A stretch of 64,000 nucleotides of DNA, taken from the sequence record NC_019526.1. One strand, 5' to 3'. Position numbers and translations under genes: made by a program. Positions 1 to 64,000 of this stretch are shown here, in pieces; position 1 is the stretch's first letter, and the number at the start of each line of letters is the position of its first letter. The notes beneath the pieces were generated by a model. That model worked only from the letters and a program-made list of their open reading frames with translations. It was not told the DNA's origin and ran no database searches.

Positions 1-2
1 AT

Positions 3-881
3 AAAATTATATGTAATGAATGCACTCCCGTTCATATAAGCACACAACACAAAGAGATATTAAATTTTATAGAAAATCTTGGTATTGAATGTGTAACGAA
101 TACACGCTCTGTTTTAAAAAGTACTATGGAATTGGATATTTTTATACCTGACTTGAATGTTGCAATAGAAATTAATGGTATGTACTGGCATAGTACTGAA
201 TACAAAGAACGACTGTATCATCAAAACAAAATGCTGGAATGTAAAGAACATGGCATTCACTTAATACAGATATGGGAAGATGAATGGAATACCAAACAAG
301 ATTTGGTTAAATTTCGTTTGATGAATGTATTAAAATGCTCCAGTACTATATATGCAAGAAAATGTAAAATAAAAGAAATCAATAAAAAAGAATGTGATAA
401 TTTTATTAATACATACCATATCCAAGGTTCTAGTTCATCATCTATTAGAATTGGTTTATATTACGAAAATGAATTATATGCAGTTATGACATTTGGAAAA
501 TCCAGATTTGATAAAACTGTTCAGTATGAATTGATACGATATTGTTCAAAAAGTACAGTCGTTGGCGGTGCATCTAAATTATTAAAGTACTTTGAGAAGA
601 AATACAAACCAGTGTCGTTGATTTCTTATGCAGATGCGTGTTGGAGTACGGGTGATTTATATATTAAACTTGGTTTTACATATAATGGATTAACTGAACC
701 TGGTTATTTTTATTACAAATCAAGTACTGGTAGAATTTCAAGGCATCAATGTCAAAAGAAAAAACTAGTCAATCAGGGATATGATGAAAATTTATCAGAA
801 TATCAAATATGTACCACTGTACTTAAATATAACAAAATATTTGATTGTGGTAATTTTAAATTCACTAAATATTACATATAA
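3..881 (+). CDS. Hef-like homing endonuclease, 5'-partial (PD-(D/E)xK nuclease plus C-terminal GNAT-like domain)
   Basis: Frame is open from the window edge; ELDIFIPDLNVAIEINGMYWH nuclease motif; YARKC...ELIRY...SYAD module shared with 19038..20747. Confidence 0.75.
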   Translation, partial: KIICNECTPVHISTQHKEILNFIENLGIECVTNTRSVLKSTMELDIFIPDLNVAIEINGMYWHSTEYKERLYHQNKMLECKEHGIHLIQIWEDEWNTKQDLVKFRLMNVLKCSSTIYARKCKIKEINKKECDNFINTYHIQGSSSSSIRIGLYYENELYAVMTFGKSRFDKTVQYELIRYCSKSTVVGGASKLLKYFEKKYKPVSLISYADACWSTGDLYIKLGFTYNGLTEPGYFYYKSSTGRISRHQCQKKKLVNQGYDENLSEYQICTTVLKYNKIFDCGNFKFTKYYI

Positions 882-900
882 CTTATAAGGAATATATAAA

Positions 901-1524
901 ATGTCTGACATTAAAAAAATCATGGAAGCTGAAAATCGTGTAGAAGCACTGAAGTTCATGCAGATTAATGAAAGTAATATTGAAAAACTGGAAGTGGTTC
1001 TCGCAATCAAATCTGGTATTGCCGATAAACTACAACGTGCTTCTGAGCAGTTGATGAACTACAGCGTTGACGTTCTCGGTCCAATTGTTGATCGTATTAA
1101 AGCAGAAGAAGGTATTGAAGTGGCCGAAGAATTTCAGTCCAGAGTTAAAAACATCCTTCAACATGCAGCAGATGTAGTTATGGATGCTAAAGACCAGATC
1201 ACTAACGAAACTCTTAAACTTACTGGTGATGTAGCTGATAATCCAGATGTGGCGGATATCGGTATTGATGATGATCTAACTGTTGATGAGGAAACCCCAA
1301 CTTTTGATATGGAATCTGATGCTTCCTTTGATGATATTGAAGAACCTGTACCGGAAGATCGTGCAATGAAAGAATCTGTACAATATACCCAAGTTGGTAT
1401 CAAAATGGAAAGTACTAAAGGTACTATTGGTACAAAATATTTCAGTACTCATAAAGAAGCTGAAAAATGGCTCAAAGAAAATGAATCTAAAGTCAAAAAA
1501 GTACTTGGGTTCGAGAAAAAATAA
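901..1524 (+). CDS. Hypothetical acidic protein
   Basis: 207 aa ORF, AAGGA RBS, phage-like codon use. Confidence 0.8.
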   Translation: MSDIKKIMEAENRVEALKFMQINESNIEKLEVVLAIKSGIADKLQRASEQLMNYSVDVLGPIVDRIKAEEGIEVAEEFQSRVKNILQHAADVVMDAKDQITNETLKLTGDVADNPDVADIGIDDDLTVDEETPTFDMESDASFDDIEEPVPEDRAMKESVQYTQVGIKMESTKGTIGTKYFSTHKEAEKWLKENESKVKKVLGFEKK

Positions 1525-1532
1525 GGTTAATT

Positions 1533-1883
1533 ATGAAATTTCGTGATATTGTAAAAATCACAGAAGATGCACCACCAAAAGATATTCGCAATATGATCAC
1601 CAGTATTGCATTATCACTAGTTGCATCTGGTAGGGAAGAGGTTGGTATTCAGTCATTGGTTAATGAAATTAAGAAAAGGACTGGTATTGATGTTCCTTAT
1701 AATGTGATGATGGATATTTTAAATTCGTTGCCATTTGTTCAGGATGCAAATTCTGATAGAGTACAATTTTCAGGAACTGATACCAGTACTGACTTTAAGC
1801 AACCTAATTCAGAAGAAAGTTCTGAACAAAAAGTACAAGATATGGCTGGTAAAGCAGCCACCGACAGTATGAAATCACTATAA
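1533..1883 (+). CDS. Hypothetical protein
   Basis: 116 aa ORF with RBS, tightly packed. Confidence 0.8.
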   Translation: MKFRDIVKITEDAPPKDIRNMITSIALSLVASGREEVGIQSLVNEIKKRTGIDVPYNVMMDILNSLPFVQDANSDRVQFSGTDTSTDFKQPNSEESSEQKVQDMAGKAATDSMKSL

Positions 1884-1888
1884 AATTT

Positions 1889-1918
1889 TTGAACAAAAAG
1901 ACAAAAATAAGCTATAAT
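1889..1918 (+). promoter_or_regulatory. Sigma70-like promoter (TTGAAC-18-TATAAT)
   Basis: TTGAAC 1889-1894 and TATAAT 1913-1918 upstream of the 1936 ORF. Confidence 0.6.
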
Positions 1919-1935
1919 TATGGAGTAACAAGGGA

Positions 1936-2643: not shown

Positions 2644-2663
2644 ATTAGCAAACTGGAGTAACA

Positions 2664-3200: not shown

Positions 3201-3231
3201 TCCTATAACGAACTTTGATTAAGGGTTTAAT

Positions 3232-6339: not shown

Positions 6340-7464
6340 ATGTCAGTGTTTCAAAAAAATACAAAATCACATTTAGAAAAGAATATGTTTTTTGATGAAG
6401 CGGTAGATATCCAACGCTTTGAAACTAACAAGTATTCTACCATTGAGAAATTAACCGAACAACAAAAAGGATTTTTCTGGAGTCCCGGTGAAGTTGACGT
6501 AAATAAAGACAAAATTGATTTTACTAAATTATCTGAAGCGGAAAAGCATATTTTCACTTCCAACCTCAAACGTCAGATACTACTTGATTCAGTACAGGGC
6601 CGTGGTCCAAACACGGTACTTCTACCACTGGCTTCGTTACCGGAAGTAGAAAATTTTATTGAAACTTGGGCGTTCTTTGAAGGTGCAATTCATAGTAAAT
6701 CATATACTCATATTATTCGTAACATCTACACCAATCCATCTGAAGTATTTGATACTATGCTTGATATTCCTGAAATTCTGGATTGTGCCGTTGACGTATC
6801 TAAGTACTATGATGATTTAGAAGAATACGGTACTTGGTATCGTATGCTTGGTGTTGGCACACATACTATCAATGGTAAAGAACTTGTTATTGACATGTAT
6901 GAACTGAAAAAGAAACTGTGGTTGTGCTTAAATTCCATTAACGTATTGGAGGGTATACGATTTTATGTCTCATTCGCTGCATCCTTTGCATTTGGTGAAA
7001 ATAAAATCATGGAAGGTAATGCCAAGATCATTAGACTAATTGCGAGGGATGAGTCTCTCCATTTAGCAGCAACTCAAATGATGCTTCGTTTGTTGAAAAA
7101 AGAAGATCCAGACTTTGTTAAAATTTCTGAAGAATGCTATGATGAAGTCCAGAGTATGTTCCTGGATGCTATTAAGCAAGAAGAAGACTGGGCTGATTAT
7201 CTATTTAAAGATGGTTCTATTATCGGTCTTAATGCTGAAATACTAAAACAGTATGTTCGCTGGATTGGATCTAAACGTATGGCAGCAGTTGGAATTAAGT
7301 GTCCATATGCTGTAACGAAAAATAGCCCACTCCCATGGATGGAACATTGGATTAGTAGTGCGGGTGTGCAGGTTGCACCACAAGAAACTGAAATTAGTTC
7401 CTATGTAATTGGTGGTATCAAAGCCGATATTACAGAAAACACGTTCAGTACATTTAAACTATAA
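6340..7464 (+). CDS. nrdB: Ribonucleotide reductase class Ia beta subunit
   Basis: FFWSPGEV, DSVQGR, EGAIHSKSY, EGIRFY, RDESLH, APQETE. Confidence 0.97.
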   Translation: MSVFQKNTKSHLEKNMFFDEAVDIQRFETNKYSTIEKLTEQQKGFFWSPGEVDVNKDKIDFTKLSEAEKHIFTSNLKRQILLDSVQGRGPNTVLLPLASLPEVENFIETWAFFEGAIHSKSYTHIIRNIYTNPSEVFDTMLDIPEILDCAVDVSKYYDDLEEYGTWYRMLGVGTHTINGKELVIDMYELKKKLWLCLNSINVLEGIRFYVSFAASFAFGENKIMEGNAKIIRLIARDESLHLAATQMMLRLLKKEDPDFVKISEECYDEVQSMFLDAIKQEEDWADYLFKDGSIIGLNAEILKQYVRWIGSKRMAAVGIKCPYAVTKNSPLPWMEHWISSAGVQVAPQETEISSYVIGGIKADITENTFSTFKL

Positions 7465-7469: not shown

Positions 7470-7503
7470 AAAATTCAGTACTGATTAAGTACTGAATTTT
7501 TTA
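7470..7503 (+). terminator. Rho-independent terminator built from two AGTACT sites
   Basis: AAAATTCAGTACT-GATTA-AGTACTGAATTTT plus T run. Confidence 0.7.
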
Positions 7504-9157: not shown

Positions 9158-9184
9158 AAAAAAGGAGGACCGTTGTCCTCCTTA
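9158..9184. terminator. Bidirectional terminator between convergent genes
   Basis: AAAAAAGGAGGAC-CGTT-GTCCTCCTT. Confidence 0.7.
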
Positions 9185-9826
9185 TAGTTTATTTAATTCA
9201 GTACCAATGAACTGCATTTGATCTTTGATTTTATTGACAAGTAATTCAACTTCGAATTTATTACAAGGTTTATCAACTGTAATCATTGTATATCCTACGA
9301 TTTCATACCCTTTGGTGTCCAAAATAGGAATAGTGATAACAGTATCATATGTGACCCTTGTGCTTTTAACATAAGCACATGTGAAGTTTTTCGGATCATA
9401 ATTTTGACTACATTCGTTGTTTGAAGTATAGATATTTTCAAAATGTACTTTGTTTAAAAGTAATTCTTGAAAAGTATTATTTTTCTTGTCAATCAAATAC
9501 ATATAATTACTTATCTTTCTTTCTGGATAACGGTTTTTAAATGCTATCCCTTCTTGTGATACTATTATTTTTGTATTTTTATCTTTGTTAAATTTATATA
9601 CAACTATATATTGTACTGAATCATCAAGATTTATAATTTCTTGCATATTGGTATCAATCCTGTTGATATGATAACTATATGGAAAAGCATTCTCTTGAAT
9701 ATGCGGAACTATTTGATTAACCAAAAAATCAGTTATTGTATCTTTATTGTAAATCATTAAAGAGAGTATAGTAACGAAAAACGCTATAATACAAAGCTTT
9801 GATAGACCATGTTTTGTGCTGAGCAT
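9182..9826 (-). CDS. T4 gp t (holin T)-like membrane protein
   Basis: One N-terminal TM helix; periplasmic domain with VVYKF and VITIPIL...IVGYTMIT pattern like T holin. Confidence 0.55.
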   Translation of the reverse strand: MLSTKHGLSKLCIIAFFVTILSLMIYNKDTITDFLVNQIVPHIQENAFPYSYHINRIDTNMQEIINLDDSVQYIVVYKFNKDKNTKIIVSQEGIAFKNRYPERKISNYMYLIDKKNNTFQELLLNKVHFENIYTSNNECSQNYDPKNFTCAYVKSTRVTYDTVITIPILDTKGYEIVGYTMITVDKPCNKFEVELLVNKIKDQMQFIGTELNKL

Positions 9827-9838
9827 AAGTTTACCTCC

Positions 9839-10561
9839 TTAATATTCCAAATAATAACCAACATCATTCGCAATATTTTGTGCTATGTTGTTGAATTGCT
9901 CAACTTCAGCTTCATCTTTAGGAACTCTTTTGAAATATACAGCAATATACCCAGTTATTGTTGCAAATTTAACAGGAGCAGAAACAAGATAAACATTTCC
10001 ATCATTAACTAATGCAGGATAGTTAATCTGAGATGTATATTCGTTTCGTGTCTCGTTACTATCTTTCAAATACTCTGTGTATATTTTTTTTATTTCAACA
10101 TAATATATGTGATTATTCCATAATTTATTAGTTTCTGCAAGAAATGAACTTAGTGGCAAGTTATCTAAATGGTAGACACTAATATCGTCTTTATTTGGTG
10201 GATTAACCTTATAGGTAACTAAAATACGTCTTTCTGAAAATTGTGTATTTTCAGGAACATACTTATAAACTAATATCATAGATATATCATTTGGATAAGC
10301 ATTGATTGCTTTAGTTAGCCCTTTATCAATAGTATCTTTATTTTCTTTCTTTATAGTATACTTCGTAGAATTTCCTAGTTCTTCATGTTTATTGGGATTG
10401 TTTAATGTATTATTGATATATAATGTCCAAGAATCTGCTGTACTATATATAATAAAACCAATAACCAAGCAAAAAAACACTGTAATTATTTTAGAAGTCT
10501 TCCATTTCGTGATCATATCAAGGAGTTTATTAATATTTTCACTATCAAAATTGATATTCAT
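9839..10561 (-). CDS. T4 gp t (holin T)-like protein
   Basis: N-terminal TM; VYKYVPEN ~ T4 VYSFRPKN; YLVSAPVKFATITGYIAVYFKR ~ T4 YMYSCPYF..IYAGTITMYWYR; GGGGA RBS. Confidence 0.65.
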   Translation of the reverse strand: MNINFDSENINKLLDMITKWKTSKIITVFFCLVIGFIIYSTADSWTLYINNTLNNPNKHEELGNSTKYTIKKENKDTIDKGLTKAINAYPNDISMILVYKYVPENTQFSERRILVTYKVNPPNKDDISVYHLDNLPLSSFLAETNKLWNNHIYYVEIKKIYTEYLKDSNETRNEYTSQINYPALVNDGNVYLVSAPVKFATITGYIAVYFKRVPKDEAEVEQFNNIAQNIANDVGYYLEY

Positions 10562-10991: not shown

Positions 10992-11508
10992 AATTATTTT
11001 ATGTACAGATAAAAATTACGGTATAGGATATAAAAATACAATTCCGTGGCATAGCAGTGAAGATTTTAAACACTTCAAAGAAGAAACTTTGAATAAAACT
11101 GTTGTGATGGGATATAATACATGGAAATCCCTACCAAATAAACCATTGTCAAAAAGACTTAATATTGTGCTTGTTAATCGTGCATATGAAGATCGTGATA
11201 TGTATGATCAAACCAACGTCTTATTTCTGGATGAAGATAATTTAGAAAGTATTATTCGTAATAACCCTGATTGTGTTATTATTGGCGGTGCATCAATTTA
11301 TAAAATGAGTTTGCCTCATGTAGATGAAATCGTACATAGTATAATTCCCAAAGAATTTGTATGTGATTGCTTTTTTGACTTCACTATTGATAAGCGTGTG
11401 ATTATTGAACGTGAAAGTTGTAAAACACTTGATGATGGTATTATGGTGGATTATTATAAATGCAACCCAAATCCAGATTATGATGATTACGTGGATTCAT
11501 ATCAATGA
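10984..11508 (+). CDS. frd: Dihydrofolate reductase
   Basis: GIGYKNTIPWH..EDFKHFKEET, VVMGYNTWKSLP.KPL.KRLNIV, IIGGASIY; start moved to MAKII. Confidence 0.93.
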   Translation: MAKIILCTDKNYGIGYKNTIPWHSSEDFKHFKEETLNKTVVMGYNTWKSLPNKPLSKRLNIVLVNRAYEDRDMYDQTNVLFLDEDNLESIIRNNPDCVIIGGASIYKMSLPHVDEIVHSIIPKEFVCDCFFDFTIDKRVIIERESCKTLDDGIMVDYYKCNPNPDYDDYVDSYQ

Positions 11509-12089
11509 AGATAAAGGATATGGAAGTTCGTTTATGTGAGCGTGGTGAAATTTCTTCATTCATTGAAGAACATCATTATTCTAAAAATATTAATGGTTGT
11601 ATAACTGATTATTGTTTCAAATTAACATATAATAATGAAATAATTGGTGCTATGTTTTATGGAAAAATGGCTATGGCTAACCAATACAAAAGATTTGTTG
11701 ATAGAGAAGAAGATTGTATTGAGTTGCGTAGATTATGCTGTATTGATGATACACCAAAAAACACTGAAAGTTTTTTTATTGGTAAAACACTAAAATGGCT
11801 TAAAAAGAACACGCAAATAAAGGTGGTTGTTAGTTATGCAGATCAAGAATATGGTCATAGTGGTATAATTTATAAAGCATCTAATTTTGAATATAATGGA
11901 TTTAAAAAAGGTGCTAAAGTTATAATCCACAATGGCAAACAATATCATGATAAAGCTATTAGAACTAAGTATAAAGGGAAGTTAAAACCATTTGCACAAA
12001 GATTAAAAGATGCATTAGACAGTGGTGATGCTTATTATAAACAAACTGCTGGAAAACATACTTACACTTACAAGTTAAGGAAAACTTAG
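11505..12089 (+). CDS. Mom-like GNAT-fold DNA (adenine) modification protein
   Basis: IELRRL...DDTPKNTESFFI, VVSYAD..GHSGIIYKASNF match the Mu Mom family pattern. Confidence 0.7.
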   Translation: MKIKDMEVRLCERGEISSFIEEHHYSKNINGCITDYCFKLTYNNEIIGAMFYGKMAMANQYKRFVDREEDCIELRRLCCIDDTPKNTESFFIGKTLKWLKKNTQIKVVVSYADQEYGHSGIIYKASNFEYNGFKKGAKVIIHNGKQYHDKAIRTKYKGKLKPFAQRLKDALDSGDAYYKQTAGKHTYTYKLRKT

Positions 12090-17066: not shown

Positions 17067-19034
17067 ATGGCTAAGAAACAAGAAAGTTCAGTACTTCAAG
17101 AACATGATGTACAACGCCTTAATGATTATCAACATGCTCGTCTACGCAGTGAAATGTACTTAGGTTCAAGAAGTATCCATGAAAGTCAAGTTCTCATTTT
17201 TGGGGAAAATTCATACCAAGTTACTAACATGGAATGGGTTCCTGCATTACTCACTGCATGTCGTGAATTATGGGATAATTCACTTGATGAGTTTAAAAAA
17301 GCCGGTACTAAAGAACCGGTACTTAAAATTGAATTTGATGAAAATGAATTAACATTCAGTTGTATTGATAATGGACGCGGTATTCCGATTGATTATGTTC
17401 CAGATTTCAATACTAATCTCTGTACTATGGTAATGACTGAAACAAAGACTGGTAGAAACTTTGATGATTCAAAGCGTGATGAAACTATTGGTCAAAATGG
17501 TCTTGGTGGATCCGTGGCAATGCTTGTAAGTTCTAAAGCTGAAATGGAAATACATCGAAAAGGTCGTCCATATAAAACATCAGCGTCCAATGATTCATAT
17601 GATGGATTTTATAAATTCAGTCAAAATTTTAAAGAAGGTACTGAATTTATTCCAGAAATTCAAATTTCTGAACCAGTAATTAGAAAAATTAGTTCTGATA
17701 AAACAGGAACAAGTATTCGTCTAACATTTAGTCCCTCTGTATTTCCTAACAGAAAGTTGCCAATTGAACTGTTGTACAGTATTCTAAAAGAAATGGCATC
17801 AGCAAATCCAACATATAAAATCTTTTTGAATAATAAGCGAATTAATGTTAAACCAACTCCAGAAAAAACATTATTCAATGCATCTAAACTAATGCAACTA
17901 AATGTTAACGATGAATCTTTTAACTTTAACAGTACTTTTTATATTATTCCAAATGCTGTTAATAATATGAATACCAATTTTCATATGCATGGTTTAGTTA
18001 ATAATGCACCAGCGTTCGATGGTGGTACTCATTTAGATACATTCAAGAAACATTTTTCACTTGGTATTGCTAATGCTCTTGAAAAAGAAGCTAAGAAACG
18101 TAAGATGAAGCCAAATCGTTCTGATATTGAAGAAGGGCTTCTGATTTATAACGTAACTACTATGAAAGCACCTTCATTCAATTCACAAATTAAATCCAAA
18201 TTAACTAACGAAAATGTAGTTAAACCAATTCAACAAGCAATGAGTACTGAATGGTTCGACGAATTAGTTAAAAAGAATAAAGATTGGGTTGATGAAATAT
18301 TTGAACGCTGTGCTGCACGTACAAATAAAAAAGATGCAGAAGAAGATCGTCGTCTTGCTAAAAAACTTCTTAAAGGTAAAGTTGCCAAACTACTTGATTC
18401 AGTTGGTACTGATCGTTCCAAATGTATTCTAATGTTGGCAGAAGGTGATTCTGCTATTTCTAACATGGCTAGTGCTCGTGATCCTAATATTCATGGTATC
18501 TTACCTTTACGTGGTAAAATTATGAATGTTAGTGGTGAAGAGAAAACGAAAGAATTAATGGATTCTGATGCATTGCATGATATCATGGCTAGTATTAACC
18601 TAGTTCCAGGCGTGAAGGCAAATCGTGATGAATTGAGTTTTGGTAAATTATACATAGCAACGGATGAAGATACTGACGGCCTTAATATAGCCGCATTGAT
18701 TTGTAATTTTCTTTATAAATTCTGGCCTGAATTATTTCAGGATGCCGATAATCCGTTTGTGTATGTATTCAAAACTCCATTTATTATTCTGGAGAAAGGG
18801 AAAGAATCAAAATACTTCTATGGTTATAATGTTTCTGAATACAATCCTGAAGATTGGAAGGGTTGGAAAGCCACACGTGCAAAAGGATTAGGAACATTGG
18901 AAAAGAGTAATTTCAGAGACGCATTCACCAATAGTGTAGCGGTTGCAATTACCGATGATGGTAATTTAGGTGAAACACTGGATTTGATATTCAATAAAAA
19001 GAGAGCAGATGATCGTAAAGCATGGATGGCTTAG
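17067..19034 (+). CDS. Type II DNA topoisomerase large subunit (GyrB/gp39+60-like)
   Basis: ELWDNSLDE, DNGRGIP, GQNGLG, AEGDSA, PLRGKIMNV, TDEDTDG, KGLG. Confidence 0.95.
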   Translation: MAKKQESSVLQEHDVQRLNDYQHARLRSEMYLGSRSIHESQVLIFGENSYQVTNMEWVPALLTACRELWDNSLDEFKKAGTKEPVLKIEFDENELTFSCIDNGRGIPIDYVPDFNTNLCTMVMTETKTGRNFDDSKRDETIGQNGLGGSVAMLVSSKAEMEIHRKGRPYKTSASNDSYDGFYKFSQNFKEGTEFIPEIQISEPVIRKISSDKTGTSIRLTFSPSVFPNRKLPIELLYSILKEMASANPTYKIFLNNKRINVKPTPEKTLFNASKLMQLNVNDESFNFNSTFYIIPNAVNNMNTNFHMHGLVNNAPAFDGGTHLDTFKKHFSLGIANALEKEAKKRKMKPNRSDIEEGLLIYNVTTMKAPSFNSQIKSKLTNENVVKPIQQAMSTEWFDELVKKNKDWVDEIFERCAARTNKKDAEEDRRLAKKLLKGKVAKLLDSVGTDRSKCILMLAEGDSAISNMASARDPNIHGILPLRGKIMNVSGEEKTKELMDSDALHDIMASINLVPGVKANRDELSFGKLYIATDEDTDGLNIAALICNFLYKFWPELFQDADNPFVYVFKTPFIILEKGKESKYFYGYNVSEYNPEDWKGWKATRAKGLGTLEKSNFRDAFTNSVAVAITDDGNLGETLDLIFNKKRADDRKAWMA

Positions 19035-19037
19035 GAT

Positions 19038-20747
19038 ATGAAACATGATGAAGTAGTTAGTATAATTAAAAAATTTGCCAATGAAGTCAAGTCCAATGGG
19101 GAATCAGTACTAAAGCAAATTAAAAAGATGGATAGATATGAAGAAGTTATTTCATATCTAAAAAGCTATTATGGTGACTATGATATTAAAGTTCTAATTG
19201 GTTCAGTACTAAATGATTTAGATACCATTCCCATTGCTGCTTGTGGGAATGTATGTAGATTTGATGGATTAAAATTGAGGTACGTATGTGCCTCATATAA
19301 AATGAACAAAGAAGAAACATGTCCTGAGTGTCATATTAAATTAAAAGAAATAATGAACAACAACAGAATGCAATCTGTGGAAATGAAGTACGGTACTCCA
19401 TATATATCTAAAGTTCCAGAATTTAGAGAGAAAGCAAAAAATACAATGTTTAATGAGTATGGTGTATATAATATTTCTAATTTGGATTCTGTGAAAAAGA
19501 AAAAAAGTGATAATTATCACAATAAAAGTTTAGAAGAAAAAGAACGTATTAAAGAAAAAAATAAGAAAAAAGTAATACAGACATATGGTGTTGATAACGT
19601 ATCTAAATCTGAAATTGTAAAACAAAAGAAACTTGGTAATAAAAATCCATTCAATAATAGTACTTTTAAAATTAAAAATATCATTAATACAACCAAACGA
19701 AGATATAATAGCATAACAGACTATTTAAAAACCAATGATAAACCATATACACTAACTTACATGCCATTTGCATATAAAGATGACCATGTATTTCAATGTA
19801 AGTGTGGTGAAATTATAAGTTGTAAAATACAATCGTTTGATACAATACGTTGTTATAAATGTTTCCCATTGGAAGTAAGTTCTGGTGAACTTTGGTTGAG
19901 ACAAGAAATTGAAAATATTATAAGTAATACATCAACAAGTACTGAAATGTTATTAAATCAAAGGTATGATTTTATTGATAACAGAGAAATTGATATATAC
20001 TTACCTGAATTGAAAATAGGTTTTGAATTCAATGGTTCGTACTGGCATAATGATGAACACAAAGATAAGTACTATCATCAGAAGAAATCGATTTCTGCAA
20101 AAAACAATGGTATCAATTTAATACATATCCATGAATCTGATTATAATAAAATAAAAGATAAAATTGTAATGAGATTAAAACATGTATTAAACAAAAATGA
20201 TAAAACAATTTATGCAAGAAAATGTATTGTAAAAGAAGTATCATTTAAAGAAAGTGAAGTATTTTTGAATGAATATCATTTTCAACAATCATGTGTATCA
20301 GGTATAAGAATTGGATTATATTATGATAATGAATTAGTAGCATTGGCTACGTATGGAAAATCCAGATATGACAAAAAATATGAATATGAATTATTGAGAT
20401 TCTGTACCAAGTATTCGGTACCTGGTGGATTTAGTAAAATAATGAAATACTTTGAGCAAACATACAACCCTAAATCATTGATGACATATGCCGATCTTGA
20501 CTGGAGTAATGGTAATGTTTATGAAAAAAATGGGTTTGAGTTTGTGAAATACACCGAACCAAGTTACTTTTATGTGGATAAATATCAAAATAAAATTTCA
20601 AGATATGATTGTCGTAAAACGGAATTATTAAAACTGTATGATTGGGCTACCAATGATATGACGGAAACTGAAATCTGTAAAAAATTAAATTACAATAAAA
20701 TATATTCATCTGGAAATATAGTTTATCGTAAAATATATAACAAATAA
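19038..20747 (+). mobile_element. Free-standing Hef-like homing endonuclease gene between the topoisomerase subunits
   Basis: Repeated KYG/YGV motifs, Zn-ribbon cysteines, EIDIYLPELKIGFEFNGSYWH, GNAT-like tail. Confidence 0.75.
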
Positions 20748-20762
20748 CAAAGAGGCAATGGA

Positions 20763-22169
20763 ATGGCTAAAAAAGAAAAAACTCAAGGTATTGATAATGC
20801 AACATTAACGCTATTAGATTACAACAGTTCTGAATATTTGAATAGCACTTCACTAGAATATTCAATGTATACATTAGATCGTGCTATTCCCGGAATTGAT
20901 GGTCTAAAGAGTTCACAACGAAAAGCAATTTTTACGCTAAGTAAAATATCAGGTGAAATTAAAACAGTATCATGTGCTGGTCGCATGATTAGTGATGGTA
21001 TCTATTTACATGGTGATTCATCTGCAAGTGGTACACTACAACAACTGGCATCACCTGTAGCAAACAATTATCCACTCATTGGTAAACGTGGTGGTTTTGG
21101 TACACAGGTAAACAGTACACCAGCATCCCCGCGATACACATATGTGAAGAAGAACAAAAGTACTGAAGAATTAATTCTTCGTGATATGGAAATTATCCCA
21201 ATGCAAGAAAACTATGATGGTACCACTATGGAACCAACACATTTTCTTCCAATCATTCCATTATCGTTGTTTGGTAATGACAGTATGTCGGTTGGTTATA
21301 AGAGTACAATTCTTCCTTATAAAATTAAAGATATTATTGATAACTGTATCCGCGTTATTGATAAAACTGAACTAAGAGAAATGACCCCATATTATGTATC
21401 AGTTGGTGCAAGCGAAACTGTAACTAAACTTGATGAAAACAAATATGAGTTCTATGGAACAGCAGAAGTTATTGATGCCAGTACCGTAAAAGTTACTGGA
21501 TTGCCACCAAACTATAGCGTTGAAAAATTTGTTGAAAAATTAATTAAGATGGGTGATGATGGTGAAATTCGTGATTATGATAATGGTAGTACTGATACCA
21601 TTGATATAACGATAAAATTACCACGTGGTACATCAAGCAAATGGACTGAAAAGGATGTAATTGATTATTTTGGTCTATCCAAGAAAATTACACAAATTCT
21701 CACAGTACTCGATGCGAATGGTCGTGTTCGTGTATATGATAACACTTCTGACCTAATTAAAGATTTCGTCGAATTTCGTTTTGGCTACTATATTAAACGT
21801 TATGAGAAAAAAGTTAAAGATTGTACTGAAGAAGTTATATATAAAATTCTAATTAAAGAATGCTTTGATAATGATATGATTGGTAAAGTTAAATCATTTA
21901 AGAATCGTGCTGAGTTAGTTGATTTTGTAACTAAACTCAATATTGATATTGGGGCAAGTGAAGATAATATTCAAAGCATAGTTAATTATCCTTCTTATCG
22001 CTGGACACAAGAAAACTATAATGCAGTATTGAAAGATATTCAGGATAATATGGATTTAATTGATAAGTACAACGATTTACTTAATAATAAAAATAAAATT
22101 TGGGATATCTACAAAGAAGAACTTAAAGAGCTTCGTAAGATTGATTTTACACCAAAACAAGAAAACTAA
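20763..22169 (+). CDS. Type II DNA topoisomerase small subunit (GyrA/gp52-like)
   Basis: RAIPGIDGLKSSQRK, YLHGDSS, ASPRYT catalytic Tyr. Confidence 0.95.
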   Translation: MAKKEKTQGIDNATLTLLDYNSSEYLNSTSLEYSMYTLDRAIPGIDGLKSSQRKAIFTLSKISGEIKTVSCAGRMISDGIYLHGDSSASGTLQQLASPVANNYPLIGKRGGFGTQVNSTPASPRYTYVKKNKSTEELILRDMEIIPMQENYDGTTMEPTHFLPIIPLSLFGNDSMSVGYKSTILPYKIKDIIDNCIRVIDKTELREMTPYYVSVGASETVTKLDENKYEFYGTAEVIDASTVKVTGLPPNYSVEKFVEKLIKMGDDGEIRDYDNGSTDTIDITIKLPRGTSSKWTEKDVIDYFGLSKKITQILTVLDANGRVRVYDNTSDLIKDFVEFRFGYYIKRYEKKVKDCTEEVIYKILIKECFDNDMIGKVKSFKNRAELVDFVTKLNIDIGASEDNIQSIVNYPSYRWTQENYNAVLKDIQDNMDLIDKYNDLLNNKNKIWDIYKEELKELRKIDFTPKQEN

Positions 22170-42707: not shown

Positions 42708-43601
42708 ATGTTTATGAAACCTATTACAGTACTGTCATTATTCAATGGGATGAGTGTTGGGTATATGGCACTAAAGAATGCTGGAATTCCAGTACAGAAA
42801 TATTACTCATCAGAAATTGATAAATTTGCTATTGCTGAATCACAAGCCAACTACCCTGATATTATTCAGTTAGGTGATATAACTAAATGGGAAGATTGGG
42901 ATATCGACTGGGGTAGTATTGACCTACTTATTGGTGGAAGTCCTTGTACTGATGTAAGTTTTGCGGGAAAACAAGAGGGGTTAGTGAAACCAGATGAAAA
43001 CGGTGATGGTGGAACAAGAAGTGGTTTATTTTATATAATGATTGACATATTCAATCATATTAAATCGATAAATCCAGATTTAAATTTTTTATTTGAAAAT
43101 GTCAAGATGAAAAAAGAACATCTTGAAGAATTTAATAATAATATAGGGGTTGATCCTGTTCTAATCAATTCTGAATTATATACTGCTCATTACAGACAGA
43201 GATATTACTGGATTAGCTCAAATAAGCTAATTCTCAATCCCACCTACAAAGCCCCAGTACTTCAAGATATTATTGTTAATGCATATACTGACAGGAATAA
43301 ATCATATTGCATTGATGCCAATTACTGGAAAAAGGGGAATATCACACAGTACTTACGCAAATCAAGAAGACAGATTGTTTATCTAAGAGACGATCATGAT
43401 TTATTCAGTACTGAAGAAAAAATTAACACATTTAAACTCAATGTTGACTATAGACATTTAACAGTAGACGAAGTATGTTTATTACAGGGTGTACCTGTTG
43501 GATTTTTTAAAGTAAGTAGTGCAACACAAGCATACAAAATGCTAGGTAATGGATGGACATGTCCAGTTATTGAACATCTATTAAAGGAAATTTTCTTTTA
43601 A
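42708..43601 (+). CDS. DNA (cytosine-5) methyltransferase
   Basis: LSLFNGM (motif I), GGSPC (IV), FENV (VI), RQRYYW (VIII), LGNGW (X). Confidence 0.92.
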   Translation: MFMKPITVLSLFNGMSVGYMALKNAGIPVQKYYSSEIDKFAIAESQANYPDIIQLGDITKWEDWDIDWGSIDLLIGGSPCTDVSFAGKQEGLVKPDENGDGGTRSGLFYIMIDIFNHIKSINPDLNFLFENVKMKKEHLEEFNNNIGVDPVLINSELYTAHYRQRYYWISSNKLILNPTYKAPVLQDIIVNAYTDRNKSYCIDANYWKKGNITQYLRKSRRQIVYLRDDHDLFSTEEKINTFKLNVDYRHLTVDEVCLLQGVPVGFFKVSSATQAYKMLGNGWTCPVIEHLLKEIFF

Positions 43602-52486: not shown

Positions 52487-52574
52487 GGCCGTATGTCCAA
52501 ATTGGTAAAGGAGACAGACTTAAAATCTGTTGGTGATATTCACCTTCTCGATTCGAGTTCGAGTGCGGCTACCA
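52487..52574 (+). tRNA. trnL: tRNA-Leu(TAA)
   Basis: Cloverleaf GGCCGTA/TGCGGCT, anticodon loop CTTAAAA, long variable arm, encoded CCA. Confidence 0.92.
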
Positions 52575-52940: not shown

Positions 52941-53016
<76 letters not shown>

Positions 53017-54263: not shown

Positions 54264-54291
54264 TTGAACAAAAAGTTCAGTACTATATAAT
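54264..54291 (+). promoter_or_regulatory. Promoter with TTGAAC-N5-GTTCAG inverted repeat
   Basis: Directly upstream of tRNA-Arg. Confidence 0.7.
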
Positions 54292-54524: not shown

Positions 54525-54616
<92 letters not shown>

Positions 54617-54633
54617 TAAAATTCAATTAAAAA

Positions 54634-54767
<134 letters not shown>

Positions 54768-54825: not shown

Positions 54826-54846
54826 AAATTTTAATTTAAATAGTAC

Positions 54847-54875
54847 TTGACAAAAATGTTCAGTACTGATACATA
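54847..54875 (+). promoter_or_regulatory. Promoter TTGACA-17-TACATA
   Basis: Variant of the tRNA-cluster promoter repeat, upstream of tRNA(CAT). Confidence 0.5.
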
Positions 54876-54884
54876 AAGAATATT

Positions 54885-54962
54885 GGCCCTTTACTCTCAA
54901 GTGGTTAGAGAATCCGACTCATAATCGGTAGGCTCTGAGTTCGAATCTCAGAAGGGCCACCA
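54885..54962 (+). tRNA. tRNA(CAT), probably Ile2 (lysidine) rather than Met
   Basis: GGCCCTT/AAGGGCC-ACCA acceptor and CGACTCATAATCG anticodon arm resemble E. coli ileX. Confidence 0.85.
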
Positions 54963-56809: not shown

Positions 56810-56820
56810 TAATAAAATTG

Positions 56821-57461: not shown

Positions 57462-57607
57462 AAGACCAAAATTGGTTGGGTTGACCATCAAAAAGTATCA
57501 CTATGTGGTTCAAAGAAAGTCGCAGTAATGATACGGTGGGATATAAGAAGCGTATGTTAGAAGAGTTATCATCAACGTCAAGAAACTAATATTATCACGG
57601 AGAAAGT

Positions 57608-57928
<321 letters not shown>

Positions 57929-57942
57929 TGAATAGATTTATA

Positions 57943-58040
57943 GGACATACTGCGGGATCTGTTTTTAAGGCTTAGGTACTTCAGTACTAAAACAATACCT
58001 TAGAAACGGAGTCCAAGTTGAATTCTTGGAATGTCCACCA
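57943..58040 (+). ncRNA. 98-nt tRNA-like RNA (6-bp acceptor + 6-bp T stem, ACCA end)
   Basis: GGACAT/ATGTCC-ACCA; TCCAAG-TTGAATT-CTTGGA; 12-bp central helix. Confidence 0.65.
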
Positions 58041-58044
58041 AATT

Positions 58045-58118
58045 ACCGCCTTAGAACAATTGGTAGTGTAACTTGATTTGTAATCAGTAGGTTATATGTT
58101 CGAGTCAGATAGGTGGCA
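58045..58118 (+). pseudogene. Degenerate tRNA-Thr(TGT)
   Basis: Cloverleaf with TTTGTAA loop but mismatches in the acceptor, D, anticodon and T stems. Confidence 0.65.
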
Positions 58119-58284
58119 CAAATAATAATAGTACTAGTAAGGTTTATTTACAGTTATGGATTCTTCTTTATATTCTAGTACTATTTCGTTTTTTAATAAA
58201 CAATTCAAAACTTTATTTTTTTTAATTTACTTAGGCTGATTCATTGAATCGGCCATTTTCTTTGTTAACAAAAGAGATAAAAAT

Positions 58285-58692
58285 ATGAAAAAATTTCTTT
58301 CAAAAGAACACGAAGAAAATATTCTTAATGCATTGAGTGTATTTCCAGAGAGTGTTATAAGTAATAATAAGAATTCTACATATTACTATGGTAAAGGTAA
58401 TTGGTTTTATTTTAGCGACAGTTCATATATGTGTGTATTAAATCTATGTACTGAAGAATATTCTTATTGTTTAAGGATCGATCCTGGTCATAAATTAATC
58501 CTACTATGCGAAAAGAATGATGAATTTTATGAAAGTGATATAGATGATACTGATTCATATATTAGTGATTTTTATCTTGAAGAAGAAAATTATTTTATGG
58601 ATAGTACTGTGAATGAAATTACCATTCCTTTTAGTATAATGAAACGTTCATATGAATTTCTAAAATACAACAGAGAAAAATTTCATGACTGA
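58285..58692 (+). CDS. FQxS-motif family protein
   Basis: EEENYFMDSTVNE. Confidence 0.75.
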   Translation: MKKFLSKEHEENILNALSVFPESVISNNKNSTYYYGKGNWFYFSDSSYMCVLNLCTEEYSYCLRIDPGHKLILLCEKNDEFYESDIDDTDSYISDFYLEEENYFMDSTVNEITIPFSIMKRSYEFLKYNREKFHD

Positions 58693-59071
58693 TATAAATG
58701 AAGTTATCGAGCATTTTTATAATTGGGTACTAACGGATCCAATAAAAACTGGATTAATTGAAAAATATAACTGCTCTATGTATTCTTATTGTTCAAATAA
58801 AGCTACGATGTATAGTAAGGATGTTGATAATTATTTACTAATCACTGACGATGTAGTTTATGATGTATTTGACAATGAAATTGTCATTGATGGCAGTGAT
58901 GTTGATGGCAGTGATGTTGATATTGTAAAATTACATGATATGGATTTCTCATGTACTGAATCATCGGCGTTTCAATTAAGCACATTATATGATTTCCGAT
59001 GCAGTACTGAAAGTATTGTATTATTATTGAAAATAGTACATATTTTAAGAAAAAAGAGAATGGTATTATAA
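58685..59071 (+). CDS. FQxS-motif family protein
   Basis: TESSAFQLSTLYD. Confidence 0.75.
   Translation: MTDINEVIEHFYNWVLTDPIKTGLIEKYNCSMYSYCSNKATMYSKDVDNYLLITDDVVYDVFDNEIVIDGSDVDGSDVDIVKLHDMDFSCTESSAFQLSTLYDFRCSTESIVLLLKIVHILRKKRMVL
58887..58921 (+). repeat. 15-bp tandem duplication (DGSDV x2)
   Basis: TTGATGGCAGTGATG x2 plus TTGAT. Confidence 0.85.
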
Positions 59072-59487
59072 TGGTGGAATTTAAGGTTCAAGATTTTTAT
59101 GATTTTGTAATGAAAGCCGAAAAGAATAATCGTGAATATATTAAAACAATTGGGGATAATACATATCGACACTACTGTTATTCTTTAACGGAGGGAATGT
59201 CTGCATTTACAAATTCAACTATGGATAATGTATTATATAATTTATTAATGCATAATTGTCATTATGTATTTGATGTTTACAGTAATCAAATAATTTATAA
59301 AATTATATTTTTTGATAAAAAACAAATTGAAAATACAATTAATTTGGATTGTTATGATTCTGAATCAAAAGAAGGATTTGCTTTTCAGTTATCAGTTTCA
59401 TATGATTTCCCATTTAGTACTGAAGATTATATTTTAATGTTAAAGATTGTTGATAAATTAAGACTAAACGAAAGGAATTTCAAATGA
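59071..59487 (+). CDS. FQxS-motif family protein
   Basis: KEGFAFQLSVSYD. Confidence 0.7.
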   Translation: MVEFKVQDFYDFVMKAEKNNREYIKTIGDNTYRHYCYSLTEGMSAFTNSTMDNVLYNLLMHNCHYVFDVYSNQIIYKIIFFDKKQIENTINLDCYDSESKEGFAFQLSVSYDFPFSTEDYILMLKIVDKLRLNERNFK

Positions 59488-59930
59488 ACATTACTAGTGT
59501 TAAACTAATTTTTGAAAACTGTGAAGCAATAGACATTCCTTTTAATGATATATTGTTTTTGCATATAGGGAAAGAATACAAAAAAACACATAGAACTTTT
59601 AATTCTTTGTCTATATAAACGGTTTTAAAAGAATTTGCTATTGCACTGAATAAGGATATTGAATGTAATTTCTGGAATAACCAGAGCATCGAAGAAAGAC
59701 TTGCTATGCGTGATATAACATGGGTAGAACTGTGCAATAATAATGAGAAAGTATCATATTATATTGAATGGCCTGAATACGATGAACATTATAGTACTGC
59801 ACAACGTTTGCAGTACACACCAGATGGTAATTTAATTTTTACCAGTTCTACTCAATCATTCATCAAAATCGAAACTGATGATATCGATCATATGGCTAAA
59901 TCAATTGGGATATACGGACATGAAAAATGA
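59484..59930 (+). pseudogene. Gene interrupted by an in-frame TAA at 59616-59618
   Basis: MNITSVKLIFENCE...SLSI*TVLKEFAI...RLAMRDITWVEL in one frame; ATGA coupling at 59484. Confidence 0.6.
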
Positions 59931-60689: not shown

Positions 60690-60706
60690 TCCAGGAGAAA
60701 ATATAT

Positions 60707-61045: not shown

Positions 61046-61054
61046 GGAAGTACA

Positions 61055-61891: not shown

Positions 61892-61912
61892 TGTATAAAA
61901 TTTGATATAATA

Positions 61913-61940
61913 AAAGCCTCCCTTCGTGGAGGCTTTTTTC
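61913..61940 (+). terminator. Rho-independent terminator
   Basis: AAAAGCCTCC-CTTCGT-GGAGGCTTTTTT. Confidence 0.75.
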
Positions 61941-61968
61941 GTTCTTTTTTTTTAATTTAAATTGAGTC

Positions 61969-61997
61969 TTGACAAATAATACATTTTTATGTATAAT
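61969..61997 (+). promoter_or_regulatory. Sigma70 promoter TTGACA-17-TATAAT
   Basis: Perfect consensus. Confidence 0.75.
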
Positions 61998-62032
61998 AAT
62001 CCTAATAATTAGAAAAGTATCAGGTGTGATTT

Positions 62033-62617
62033 ATGTTAAGTACTTTTAAGCGAGTTTATTTAAGAAACAACAAAATGCAAGTTCGTTTACACAAAGACGA
62101 AGCTGATTCGTTTATGGCTAAAGCTATTGTTAAATCTGAATTGTACAAACGCCTTTCACCAAAAGAAAGCTCGCCATATGGATTTAATCACCCACACAGC
62201 CATTATGTTGGATTGGTGTGTGAACACGCTGCTTATGTGTTGTTCACGGAACTGGAAGAAATGACTGGCATCAAATACGATATCGATCCAGCATTCCAGA
62301 ATAGTAAAAGAGATGGTGAATGTGATTTAATTGTTAACAATCTACGTATAGAAGTGAAGGGTATTAAGTACAAATCATGGACTAATTATGGTCCGTGTAT
62401 CAGTACAAGACAATTGAAGAATATTGAGAAAAAAGCAGATATCATTCTGTGGGTTTTGTATAATGAAAAACGTCATGAATTTTCGTTTGAAGGTTTTAAT
62501 TATGTAAAAGATGTACATACTGTACCAGTTAAAATTACTGGTGCTAAAGGTAAACCACAAATTAAAAATCATCCAGTTATTGATATTATTAAACCATTAC
62601 AGGAATTACCAATATGA
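62033..62617 (+). CDS. Putative PD-(D/E)xK-fold nuclease-like protein
   Basis: GLVCEHAA...DGECDLIVNNLRIEVKG. Confidence 0.55.
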   Translation: MLSTFKRVYLRNNKMQVRLHKDEADSFMAKAIVKSELYKRLSPKESSPYGFNHPHSHYVGLVCEHAAYVLFTELEEMTGIKYDIDPAFQNSKRDGECDLIVNNLRIEVKGIKYKSWTNYGPCISTRQLKNIEKKADIILWVLYNEKRHEFSFEGFNYVKDVHTVPVKITGAKGKPQIKNHPVIDIIKPLQELPI

Positions 62618-62871
62618 TCAAATGTAATATCGTAGTGTATAATTATGAGATTAATTCACGCGATGGAAGTGAAGAATTAGTGAATTCATATTTAGAATAT
62701 GTAGTTAATTTTCCAGTACTGCCGGCGATTGGTTCTGAATTGAAAATTTATACATACAATGAAAAAGTATATGTAGTACTGGATATCGAATACAGAACAC
62801 GTATTATGGACTGTCATAATGTTGACAATCCAAGTACCATGGAAATTAATATCATTGTTAAGGAAGTATAA
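62614..62871 (+). CDS. Hypothetical protein (likely paralog of the next ORF)
   Basis: LPAIGSEL...VYVVLDIEY. Confidence 0.7.
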   Translation: MIKCNIVVYNYEINSRDGSEELVNSYLEYVVNFPVLPAIGSELKIYTYNEKVYVVLDIEYRTRIMDCHNVDNPSTMEINIIVKEV

Positions 62872-63113
62872 TGAACCAACAATACATGATTAAAGTGGTT
62901 TTGTACAAAAATGATAGTCAGAGAACTAAAATCTGTTCTTCTTATGTTCAGTCATTACCAAGAACCGGAGAACTTATTACAGTACTTAATGATAAATTCA
63001 TTGTTGAACAGATTGAACACACACTGTATCCAATTAGTACAACCGATACTGTTTCGTGGAATATGAATCAACATTCTGAATCTGGTATTGCTATTATTTG
63101 TACAAAAACATAA
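62871..63113 (+). CDS. Hypothetical protein
   Basis: LPRTGELI...FIVEQIEH. Confidence 0.7.
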   Translation: MNQQYMIKVVLYKNDSQRTKICSSYVQSLPRTGELITVLNDKFIVEQIEHTLYPISTTDTVSWNMNQHSESGIAIICTKT

Positions 63114-63123
63114 GGTACCACAT

Positions 63124-63570
63124 ATGATGTATTTTATATTTCTGTACTTAATATGTCACCTTGTTATTGTTACTATTATGGACAGACATTCACACTTTGG
63201 ATATAGTTATAAAGTTGCTAAGATTTATGGTTTTAAATCTTATTTTGTTGCACTATTTTATAGTTATATACTCGATCCAAAGTATATGATATTGTCTCTT
63301 ATACTACAAAAAGAAGCAAACATTGATACTATTTCTAAAATAGAATTCGTATGTAGGCGATTTCTTAATTCAGATGATAAATGTTCAGTTAAATTTCATT
63401 CGGATAAAGTTATTTTTGTATATAACAATGTATTCACTTGTGGTATTGAATTAAATCAGGTATTAGGTATAGTTGATATTTCATGGAATCATAACGTCAT
63501 TATGCATCCAAGAACTATCAAGCTAATAGAAGCATGTAAAATAAAAGTTGACAGCGACACAAAGAGATGA
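63124..63570 (+). CDS. Membrane protein
   Basis: Hydrophobic N-terminus; start moved to MMYF. Confidence 0.65.
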   Translation: MMYFIFLYLICHLVIVTIMDRHSHFGYSYKVAKIYGFKSYFVALFYSYILDPKYMILSLILQKEANIDTISKIEFVCRRFLNSDDKCSVKFHSDKVIFVYNNVFTCGIELNQVLGIVDISWNHNVIMHPRTIKLIEACKIKVDSDTKR

Positions 63571-63604
63571 TATTATATAGAATAAACATATTAAAGAGGT
63601 GTAT

Positions 63605-64000
63605 ATGGATGCTTTAGCTACTCTATTCAAACTGAATACTTCAGAAAAAGAAGGTTATTTGAGTATCAGTGATCTTGAAAATACAAGTGAATATATTTTC
63701 AAAAATACAATCAAAATTAAAGCGAATAAGGATAAAAGCAATACACATTTCACAAAATGGATTGCTTATTGGGAGGGTGTTAATTTCGCAGTTGAAATGA
63801 CAGTTCTACCAAAAGTATTAAGTACCGGATTTGTTAAAGTTGTTATTATTGATAAAAATCTTCGACCAATTTCAGAAATTGGTGAATACCCAGTTAAGGG
63901 TACTAAAGTTTTTGGTACCATGATCAATAATAAGTTCATGATCGAAAAAACAAAAACTCAATACATCAATCAGGTTATTTCTGAATTCGAGAACAAACCT
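63605..64000 (+). CDS. Hypothetical protein, 3'-partial
   Basis: GAGGTG RBS; frame is open to the window end. Confidence 0.7.
   Translation, partial: MDALATLFKLNTSEKEGYLSISDLENTSEYIFKNTIKIKANKDKSNTHFTKWIAYWEGVNFAVEMTVLPKVLSTGFVKVVIIDKNLRPISEIGEYPVKGTKVFGTMINNKFMIEKTKTQYINQVISEFENKP

Follow-up and report, generated by a model that had tools for sequence, protein, structure and literature searches.

Genomic Context of the Window

The stretch of DNA analyzed here (the window; 64,000 nucleotides from record NC_019526.1) corresponds, at 100% identity, to record positions 124,001–188,000 on the plus strand of the Klebsiella jumbo phage vB_KleM_RaK2 (JQ513383 / NC_019526), a lytic member of the genus Alcyoneusvirus with a genome of 345,809 bp. 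The window contains replication and nucleotide-metabolism genes, many small open reading frames (ORFs), and a tRNA cluster, and ~10% of it is non-coding. Our subject is the palindromic hexamer AGTACT, which a preliminary description, made from the letters of the window alone, had reported to be strongly over-represented throughout. For comparison, we used samples of phAPEC6 (Asteriusvirus), GAP32 (Mimasvirus), fHe-Yen9-04 (Eneladusvirus), PA5oct (e.g., 100–150 kb), Atu_ph07, T4, and T5. The AGTACT excess is not mentioned in the papers on the RaK2, CBB, and Sharanji phages or in a jumbo-phage review, and full-text literature searches did not retrieve it; as far as the accessible literature shows, the excess in RaK2-like phages was previously unreported.

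Size of the AGTACT Excess

We detected 151 AGTACT sites in the window (2.4 per kb), in comparison with 13.4 ± 3.4 (maximum 21) in 100 dinucleotide-preserving shuffles, and the reported over-representation was thereby confirmed; the manual counts of nine sites in 1–2000 and eight in 57500–59500, given in the preliminary description, were both exact on recount. The observed/expected ratio depended on the order of the Markov model (6.9, 11.2, 5.2, 2.4, and 1.1 for orders 0, 1, 2, 3, and 4, respectively). The order-4 value is uninformative, because the motif itself gives rise to the AGTAC and GTACT counts. When the motif was masked in the order-3 background, 302 both-strand counts were observed against 51 expected, a ~6-fold excess. 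Correction for k-mer and dicodon bias had been named beforehand as the analysis that could refute the claim, and the excess persisted both in this masked model and in the synonymous shuffles described below. Among all 4,096 hexamers, AGTACT was the rank 1 outlier in the window and in the whole RaK2 genome. It thus shows the roughly ten-fold palindrome excess, retained after low-order k-mer correction, that characterizes elements resembling the highly iterated palindrome HIP1.

The enrichment increased with palindrome length, in the order GTAC, AGTACT, CAGTACTG, and TCAGTACTGA. At order 1, GTAC occurred at 431 sites in the window (~155 expected), CAGTACTG at 35 (~0.5 expected), and TCAGTACTGA at 14 (~0.05 expected); the extended forms constitute a minority of the sites.

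Reading Frames and Protein Sequences

The sites in the window are distributed over all reading frames, as had been claimed: 71 are read as AGT-ACT, 50 as xxA-GTA-CTx, and 13 as xAG-TAC-Txx, and the remaining 17 are non-coding. Shuffling synonymous codons within genes gave 39.6 ± 5.4 sites against 135 observed, and a stricter shuffle, which kept the protein, the codon usage, and all dinucleotides including those at codon junctions, gave 56.4 ± 5.7. The earlier judgment that codon choice alone is unlikely to explain the sites is consistent with both results. Frame by frame, the excess was 2–6-fold over the synonymous shuffle and 2–3.4-fold under the dinucleotide-preserving version; both null models retain an amino acid sequence that is itself already distorted by the motif. 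In non-coding DNA, the 17 sites compare with 1.9–2.3 expected, and the non-coding and coding densities are equal.

The distortion of the proteins is visible in the dipeptides. The two most over-represented pairs in the window are Ser-Thr (142 vs 76 expected) and Val-Leu (157 vs 97), whereas the reversed pairs Thr-Ser and Leu-Val showed no enrichment. AGT-ACT encodes 71 of the 142 Ser-Thr pairs, in comparison with ~15% predicted from codon usage. AGT accounts for 33% of the Ser codons, and AGT, ACT, and GTA are preferred codons in the window. Since all frames are enriched and the Ser-Thr and Val-Leu excess is not mirrored by the reversed pairs, the pressure on AGTACT acts at the DNA level and is strong enough to distort amino acid sequences. 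The dispersal over all frames and non-coding DNA, with its imprint on proteins, is a further HIP-like property.

Distribution, Spacing, and Flanks

The whole RaK2 genome contains 937 AGTACT sites (2.7 per kb). Each 10-kb bin holds 12–35 of them, except in a hot zone at 220–250 kb, where the bins hold 52–69. The density is maintained at ~1.6–2.7 per kb across all gene classes, frames, and intergenic DNA, and the sites are evenly spread along the length of genes. The spacing of the 151 sites in the window is near-Poisson. In 0–220 kb, we observed a slight under-dispersion (coefficient of variation 0.905, P = 0.007) with a mild shortage of gaps below 30 bp, and in 250–346 kb no departure from Poisson was found. 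The spacing and periodicity analysis revealed no regular spacing except a 20-bp pair in promoters.

The symmetrized flank consensus across the genome is TTC-AGTACT-GAA, in which C occupies position −1 in 49% of the half-sites and G in 6%. The window showed the same preference, with C at −1 and G at +1 in 42–50% of the sites and G at −1 in only 6%. Palindromic extension is absent at 571 of the 937 sites, and the complementarity of the flanks is hardly greater than independence would give and disappears beyond ±3. Near-independence of the two flanks is the expectation for a dimer that reads two half-sites.

Several local features were also noted. The hef gene (window 1–881) and a 1.7-kb Hef-like homing endonuclease gene are motif-rich (5.7 and 2.9 sites per kb, respectively); the latter splits the genes for the gp39-like and gp52-like topoisomerase II subunits (window 17067–22169). 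The adjacent minus-strand genes ORF145w and ORF146w (window 9182–10561, 1.37 kb together) contain no AGTACT, with ~3 expected; the only other minus-strand gene in the window is ORF220w (186 nt). A 30-kb sample of Escherichia coli K-12 (3.80–3.83 Mb), too small for interpretation, contained nine sites against 2.8 expected at order 1, or 0.3 per kb.

Phyletic Range and Turnover

AGTACT was the top hexamer in each of the other three enterobacterial genera, with 69 sites observed against 11 expected in phAPEC6 (infecting E. coli), 114 against 14 in GAP32 (Cronobacter), and 94 against 10 in fHe-Yen9-04 (Yersinia). In the Pseudomonas relative PA5oct, which has the same GC content, the 100–150 kb sample held three sites against 14 expected, an approximately five-fold depletion. 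No excess was found in the samples of the Agrobacterium relative Atu_ph07 (2 vs 3 expected), T4 (12 vs 9), or T5, the DNA of which is unmodified (10 vs 14). Because T4 and T5 lack the excess on the same host, the trait belongs to the phage clade and not to the host environment; a general host effect was rejected on the same ground.

The flank preference is lineage-variable, as C at −1 ranges over 49%, 44%, 36%, and 21% in the four genera, and only the hexamer itself is strictly conserved. When orthologues were aligned by codon, 25% of the RaK2 sites were found at the same position in phAPEC6 (14% for controls) and 20% in fHe-Yen9-04 (9% for controls). All of the enriched lineages nevertheless keep a 6.5–12-fold excess, although silent sites are saturated. 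The combination of few shared positions, saturated silent sites, and a preserved excess indicates that the word is actively maintained. At shorter range, 14 of 116 sites were polymorphic among four Alcyoneusvirus genomes that are 0.65–1.3% apart (eight losses, two gains, and four ambiguous cases). Individual AGTACT sites are therefore weakly constrained and continually replaced, and the pressure acts on their density. A lineage-wide trait with positional turnover, here spanning four genera with 20–25% positional conservation, is again a HIP-like property.

Promoters, Terminator, and Untranslated Regions

The hot zone, which is filled with tiny early ORFs, contains a stereotyped sigma70-type promoter, AGTAC-TTGACA-N9-AGTACTG-TATAAT, with a variable N9. 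One AGTACT abuts the −35 hexamer and a second lies just upstream of the −10 hexamer, 20 bp away. Genome-wide, a distance of exactly 20 bp between two motifs occurred in 19 cases, in comparison with 1–5 cases at neighboring distances; the number of sigma70-type early promoters with such a pair is put at ~25. Between these double-motif promoters the spacers diverge, whereas both AGTACT copies are kept; further promoters carry the −10-proximal copy alone. Uncultivated RaK2-like contigs, retrieved by the promoter pattern, displayed the same architecture and the same AGTACT density. Promoter-associated copies amount to less than 10% of all sites. A single motif is both fixed in early promoters and dispersed, in the manner of a stoperator. 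The dispersed copies did not behave as cryptic intragenic promoters, as a −10-like hexamer follows 10.4% of them and 9% of random positions.

The preliminary description had placed sites in promoters, terminators, and RNA stems, and the tRNA region and the nrdB terminator bear this out. A sigma70-type promoter, TTGAAC-N16-TATAAT (window 54264–54291, plus strand; 10/12 match), lies upstream of tRNA-Arg (54303), with AGTACT (54279) one base upstream of the −10 hexamer. A second promoter (54639–54667, plus strand; 10/12 match) precedes tRNA-Ser(UGA) (54680); its AGTACT-G (54654) provides the TG of an extended −10 element (AGTAC-TG-A-TATAAT). Upstream of tRNA-Met (54885), we found a double-motif promoter of the early-region type, AGTAC-TTGACA-N9-AGTACTG (54842–54880, plus strand; record 178842), with copies at 54842 and 54862, 20 bp apart, and a weak −10 hexamer. 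After nrdB, which ends at 7464, a terminator-like hairpin (7470–7500, plus strand) carries AGTACT in each arm (7477 and 7488; AAAATTCAGTACT / AGTACTGAATTTT) and is followed by a T-run; its folding energy is −15.6 kcal/mol. In addition, five 5′ untranslated regions (UTRs) contain long perfect motif-centered palindromes directly before the ribosome-binding site.

Within the same cluster, the phage gene for tRNA-Ser(GCU) (54529–54617, plus strand) decodes AGY codons, which fits the heavy motif-imposed use of AGT. ARAGORN predicted eight tRNA genes in the window, in comparison with the five annotated in RefSeq; the additional ones are tRNA-Leu(UAA) (52487–52574), tRNA-Gly(UCC) (52941–53016), and tRNA-Met(CAU) (54885–54962).

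Two further observations concern promoter-like contexts. A gene-free 1.5-kb gap contains five Fur-box-like palindromes AATGATAATGATTCTCATT (record ~225.6–226.1 kb) and ~20 AGTACT sites; at least two of these palindromes continue straight into CAGTACTG, and no Rfam family matched. The cluster may represent iron-responsive early transcription or an unannotated regulatory locus. Viral contigs of ~41% GC in IMG/VR carry a single promoter with an AGTAC-TTGACA ... AGTAC-TGTATAAT layout, followed by a GC-rich discriminator. They look unrelated to RaK2, given their normal GCGC content and the lack of a cultured-phage, tRNA, or Rfam match.

Words Purged from the Same Genomes

The general avoidance of palindromes by phages, invoked in the preliminary description as a contrast, is extreme in these genomes. 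GCGC does not occur in RaK2, in which 244 both-strand counts (~122 sites) are expected in 346 kb, and it is also missing from the Asterius-, Mimas-, and Eneladusvirus samples. The hexamers AGGCCT, CCTAGG, CTGCAG, GAGCTC, GCATGC, and TCCGGA are likewise at zero in the four genera, and CAGCTG has at most one site; in all, true avoidance extends to GCGC and eight 6-bp palindromes. PA5oct and T4 showed roughly normal counts for most of these words, and GCGC is near-normal in PA5oct, Atu_ph07, T4, and T5. In view of this extreme avoidance, the twelve-fold excess of AGTACT is hard to see as anything other than actively maintained. Total loss of these words in phages of four host genera suggests either that restriction is avoided very broadly or that the phages encode a nuclease cutting at them.

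Other words are scarce in RaK2 as well. In both-strand counts, GACATC/GATGTC (2 found, 144 expected) and CTCCTC/GAGGAG (3 found, 41 expected) are nearly absent, a hint that type IIS, type III, or similar systems are being avoided. Depletion of TAAATA/TATTTA is 2.7-fold, and TATAAATA occurs at 23 sites against 89 expected, a pattern that fits avoidance of spurious T4-type late promoters; ATAAATA is the predicted late promoter of the RaK2-like clade according to the CBB paper.

A Candidate Reader in the Early Region

A screen of ten larger early-region proteins singled out ORF332 (record 230,247–230,747; 166 amino acids), which is labelled a DNA-binding protein in two relatives. It matched the H-NS N-terminal domain PF22470 with an E value of 1.7e-4 and 21.9 bits, below the 24.5-bit cut-off, and PF22470 is precomputed on six of seven close homologues. 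The ORF332 profile is co-linear with E. coli H-NS over 85 columns, a weak alignment (hhalign E 0.003, probability 9.5%) that places G-N of ORF332 against G-R of H-NS, the QGR motif being replaced. The AlphaFold model (predicted local distance difference test score 80) consists of a long coiled coil, a linker, a beta-hairpin, and a helix, a topology that fits H-NS. Foldseek returned nothing significant for this model; a plasmid H-NS, at rank 7, was the most suggestive match.

A search that used a divergent member as the query gave homologues in 67 phage records. Every one of these phages belongs to the enterobacterial clade, and there is no Pseudomonas or Agrobacterium phage among them. In many cases the gene comes first or is located within the terminal repeat, and the contigs encoding this family are AGTACT-rich and devoid of GCGC. 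The promoter of ORF332 itself carries AGTACT directly 3′ of the −35 hexamer. We consider it speculative that the reader of the motif is this clade-restricted, possibly H-NS-like early DNA-binding family.

Interpretation and Alternative Explanations

The explanation that we favor, tentatively and at a little below even probability, is that AGTACT is a selected signature word that would be read by a clade-specific phage factor, serving at early promoters as an operator-type site and elsewhere as a mark along the whole chromosome. The clade consists of the RaK2-like jumbo phages that infect Enterobacterales (Alcyoneus-, Asterius-, Mimas-, and Eneladusvirus). The phage-encoded factor, most likely a symmetric DNA-binding protein, would recognize AGTACT on double-stranded DNA and would act as an operator-type regulator at the early promoters. 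The ~850 dispersed copies might mark or coat the phage chromosome, which carries approximately ten-fold more AGTACT per kb than host DNA, for organization, protection, or self-specific control.

A more specific version of this proposal, which we regard as doubtful, is a private chromosome code. Here an immediate-early clade-specific protein, possibly of the ORF332 family, would read AGTACT, coat, organize, or protect the incoming 346-kb genome, and switch off early promoters. If this were true, AGTACT would be the first case of a virus-encoded identity word that has a nucleoid protein of its own as reader, and no HIP-like element before it would have had an assignable reader.

Several points weigh against a clade-specific reader of this kind. 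The likeness of ORF332 to H-NS is sub-threshold in every test, and H-NS-type domains normally read the AT-rich minor groove and not a defined hexamer. The phyletic pattern of ORF332 matches that of the motif, but many other clade-specific genes would match it too. A strict bare hexamer with lineage-variable flanks is a pattern seen more typically with restriction-modification-type enzymes than with helix-turn-helix regulators. Among the close Alcyoneusvirus relatives, the site columns vary at the background rate (15 of 696, 2.2%, vs 2.0% genome-wide), and strong per-site purifying selection was not seen at ~1% divergence. These short-range data fit weak selection on many sites as well as an equivalent drive by biased conversion, and do not separate the two.

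The first alternative is that AGTACT is the target of a phage methyltransferase or another modifying enzyme, and that its density is selected for a genome-wide process of the modified sites, such as protection, discrimination of old and new strands, or methylation-timed promoter activity. The strict 6-bp palindrome with variable flanks resembles the targets of type II enzymes, and copies at the −35 and −10 elements would permit epigenetic timing. RaK2 encodes a C-5 cytosine DNA methyltransferase, gp194 (window 42708–43601, plus strand; PF00145, E 1.7e-30), a PF05869 Dam-family methyltransferase, gp447, and a Mom-like DNA-modification protein, ORF149 (window 11505–12089, plus strand; PF25680, E 4e-37). 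A role of gp194 as the modifier of the motif cytosine is possible but unsupported. Orthologues of gp194 and gp447 with >60% identity were seen only in Asteriusvirus and not in all four enriched genera, a patchy distribution on which we rejected both as clade-wide readers. The Mom-like protein was rejected because its presence at this locus is peculiar to the RaK2 lineage; between frd and dda, where RaK2 has the Mom-like gene, phAPEC6 and fHe-Yen9-04 carry RNase HI. Moreover, the target context of Mu Mom is unlike AGTACT.

RaK2 DNA is reported to resist most restriction enzymes, which is in keeping with modification, but the sole methylation reported for it is at CpG, a dinucleotide absent from AGTACT (PMC3622015). 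One site per ~400 bp would also offer poor protection, and modification alone leaves the graded palindromic flanks unexplained. On balance, we judge this alternative to be unlikely.

The second alternative is that AGTACT arises from a neutral bias in mutation or repair, through very short patch (VSP)-like repair or biased gene conversion in T4-like recombination, with promoters and hairpins having co-opted the word. The near-Poisson, frame-indifferent placement, the turnover of most sites, and the background mutation rate among close relatives are what such a bias would produce, and we know of no settled cause for HIP1 either. Among the nine one-mismatch neighbor classes, none was depleted: those that keep GTAC stood at 1.35–1.63-fold and the others at ~1.0–1.2-fold, and AGTATT/AATACT, the deamination product of the motif cytosine, showed no depletion. 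The absence of a depleted neighbor argues against a specific mismatch-repair drive, and VSP-type repair was rejected for this reason. Furthermore, the promoter copies are kept while the spacers diverge, the enrichment climbs with palindrome length like a binding-energy gradient, and no candidate Vsr-type gene is present among the annotated genes. We consider a neutral origin quite improbable. The methylase or repair drive that the preliminary description had listed among its options thus found no support, in view of the undepleted neighbors and of methyltransferase orthologues (>60% identity) seen only in Asteriusvirus.

An RNA-level role, with the motif forming a GUAC-loop hairpin in phage transcripts or serving there as a ribonuclease site, for instance, would be compatible with a palindrome that is identical in either transcript orientation and with the motif in the stems of five 5′ UTR palindromes and one terminator. 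The marginal flank complementarity, which is gone beyond ±3, and the 571 unextended sites speak against it, as do the copies upstream of −35, which would lie outside the transcripts from those promoters. A hairpin or cruciform requirement was rejected on the same negligible covariation and unextended sites, and a role in RNA appears very unlikely.

Recruitment or titration of the host nucleoid-occlusion factor SlmA, by which the sites would block or free host division during infection, has the attraction of an identical core, since AGTACT corresponds to positions 4–9 of the E. coli SlmA site GTGAGTACTCAC and contains its A4-G5-Y6 / R7-C8-T9 core. In that site G1, T2, A4, and G5 are required, any purine is accepted at position 3, and flexibility is greatest at position 6 (PMC3020112). 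The enriched phages all infect SlmA-bearing Enterobacterales and the Pseudomonas and Agrobacterium relatives are not enriched, but T4 and T5, with the same host, show no enrichment either. The phage sites have the opposite profile, with T-T-C flanks and a strict center. The required GTR half-flanks are scarce (20 of 1,874, 1.1%, vs ~47, 2.5%, expected), and only one full SlmA site exists in the 346-kb RaK2 genome. The tolerance at position 6 is not reproduced, as AGCACT/AGTGCT shows no enrichment (ratio 1.05–1.65) and AGCGCT is absent. No SlmA homologue was found in RaK2. The flank analysis largely refutes SlmA recruitment, which we rejected as highly improbable.

Finally, an origin of the excess as a side effect of codon usage, of a preference for certain dipeptides, or of low-order composition, as the preferred codons AGT, ACT, and GTA and the maximal-order Markov ratio of 1.1 might suggest, is refuted with near certainty by the synonymous shuffles, the non-coding excess (17 vs ~2), the enrichment of all frames, the one-sided rise of Ser-Thr and Val-Leu, and the three sites per 50 kb in PA5oct at equal GC.

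Significance and Comparison with Known Systems

A HIP-like puzzle, known mainly from cyanobacteria with slow genetics, is now found in lytic E. coli and Klebsiella phages that can be cultured. The sharp phylogenetic boundary, the foothold in early promoters, and the short list of candidate readers make its cause directly testable. One phage genome has been shaped by both extreme palindrome avoidance and extreme selection for a single palindrome, and the pressure that rewrites its proteins matters for the interpretation of codon and dipeptide statistics. Recoding therapeutic-candidate phages could destroy hundreds of functional sites. In metagenomes, AGTACT density together with GCGC absence provides a simple signature of the clade.

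AGTACT is identical to the recognition sequence of ScaI-type restriction-modification systems, and like such a target it is conserved as a strict hexamer. Restriction targets are avoided in phage genomes, here exemplified by GCGC and CTGCAG, whereas AGTACT is enriched eleven- to twelve-fold. With the SlmA-binding sequence it shares the central hexamer and the taxonomic range of the hosts; it differs in the under-representation of the flanks that SlmA requires, in its strict center, and in number, with ~50 SlmA sites per bacterial chromosome against 937 AGTACT sites in RaK2. Chi, the DNA uptake and uptake signal sequences (DUS/USS), and the FtsK-orienting polar sequences (KOPS) are likewise genome-wide over-represented identity words, which allow a protein machine to tell self DNA from other DNA and which weak selection maintains while copies turn over. 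They are asymmetric, have a strand orientation, and are read by known machinery, whereas AGTACT is symmetric and its reader putative.

In its use, AGTACT resembles the stoperator of cluster A mycobacteriophages, in which one motif similarly provides both the early-promoter operator and dispersed copies. Stoperators are asymmetric, orientation-biased 13–14-mers of temperate phages, with ~20–35 copies that are mostly intergenic. AGTACT, in contrast, is a palindromic hexamer with ~940 mostly intragenic copies in a lytic jumbo phage.

AGTACT also resembles HIP1 (GCGATCGC) of cyanobacteria, as the preliminary description had proposed, and the comparison holds in each shared property: a short perfect palindrome, an excess of about an order of magnitude (~10-fold), a spread over all frames and non-coding DNA, an imprint on codons and amino acids, and lineage specificity. 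HIP1 has been linked to cognate methyltransferases, and modification of the HIP1 word has been proposed. Unlike HIP1, AGTACT is viral, 6 bp long, and AT-rich, resides in a palindrome-purged genome, and doubles as a fixed element of sigma70 promoters.

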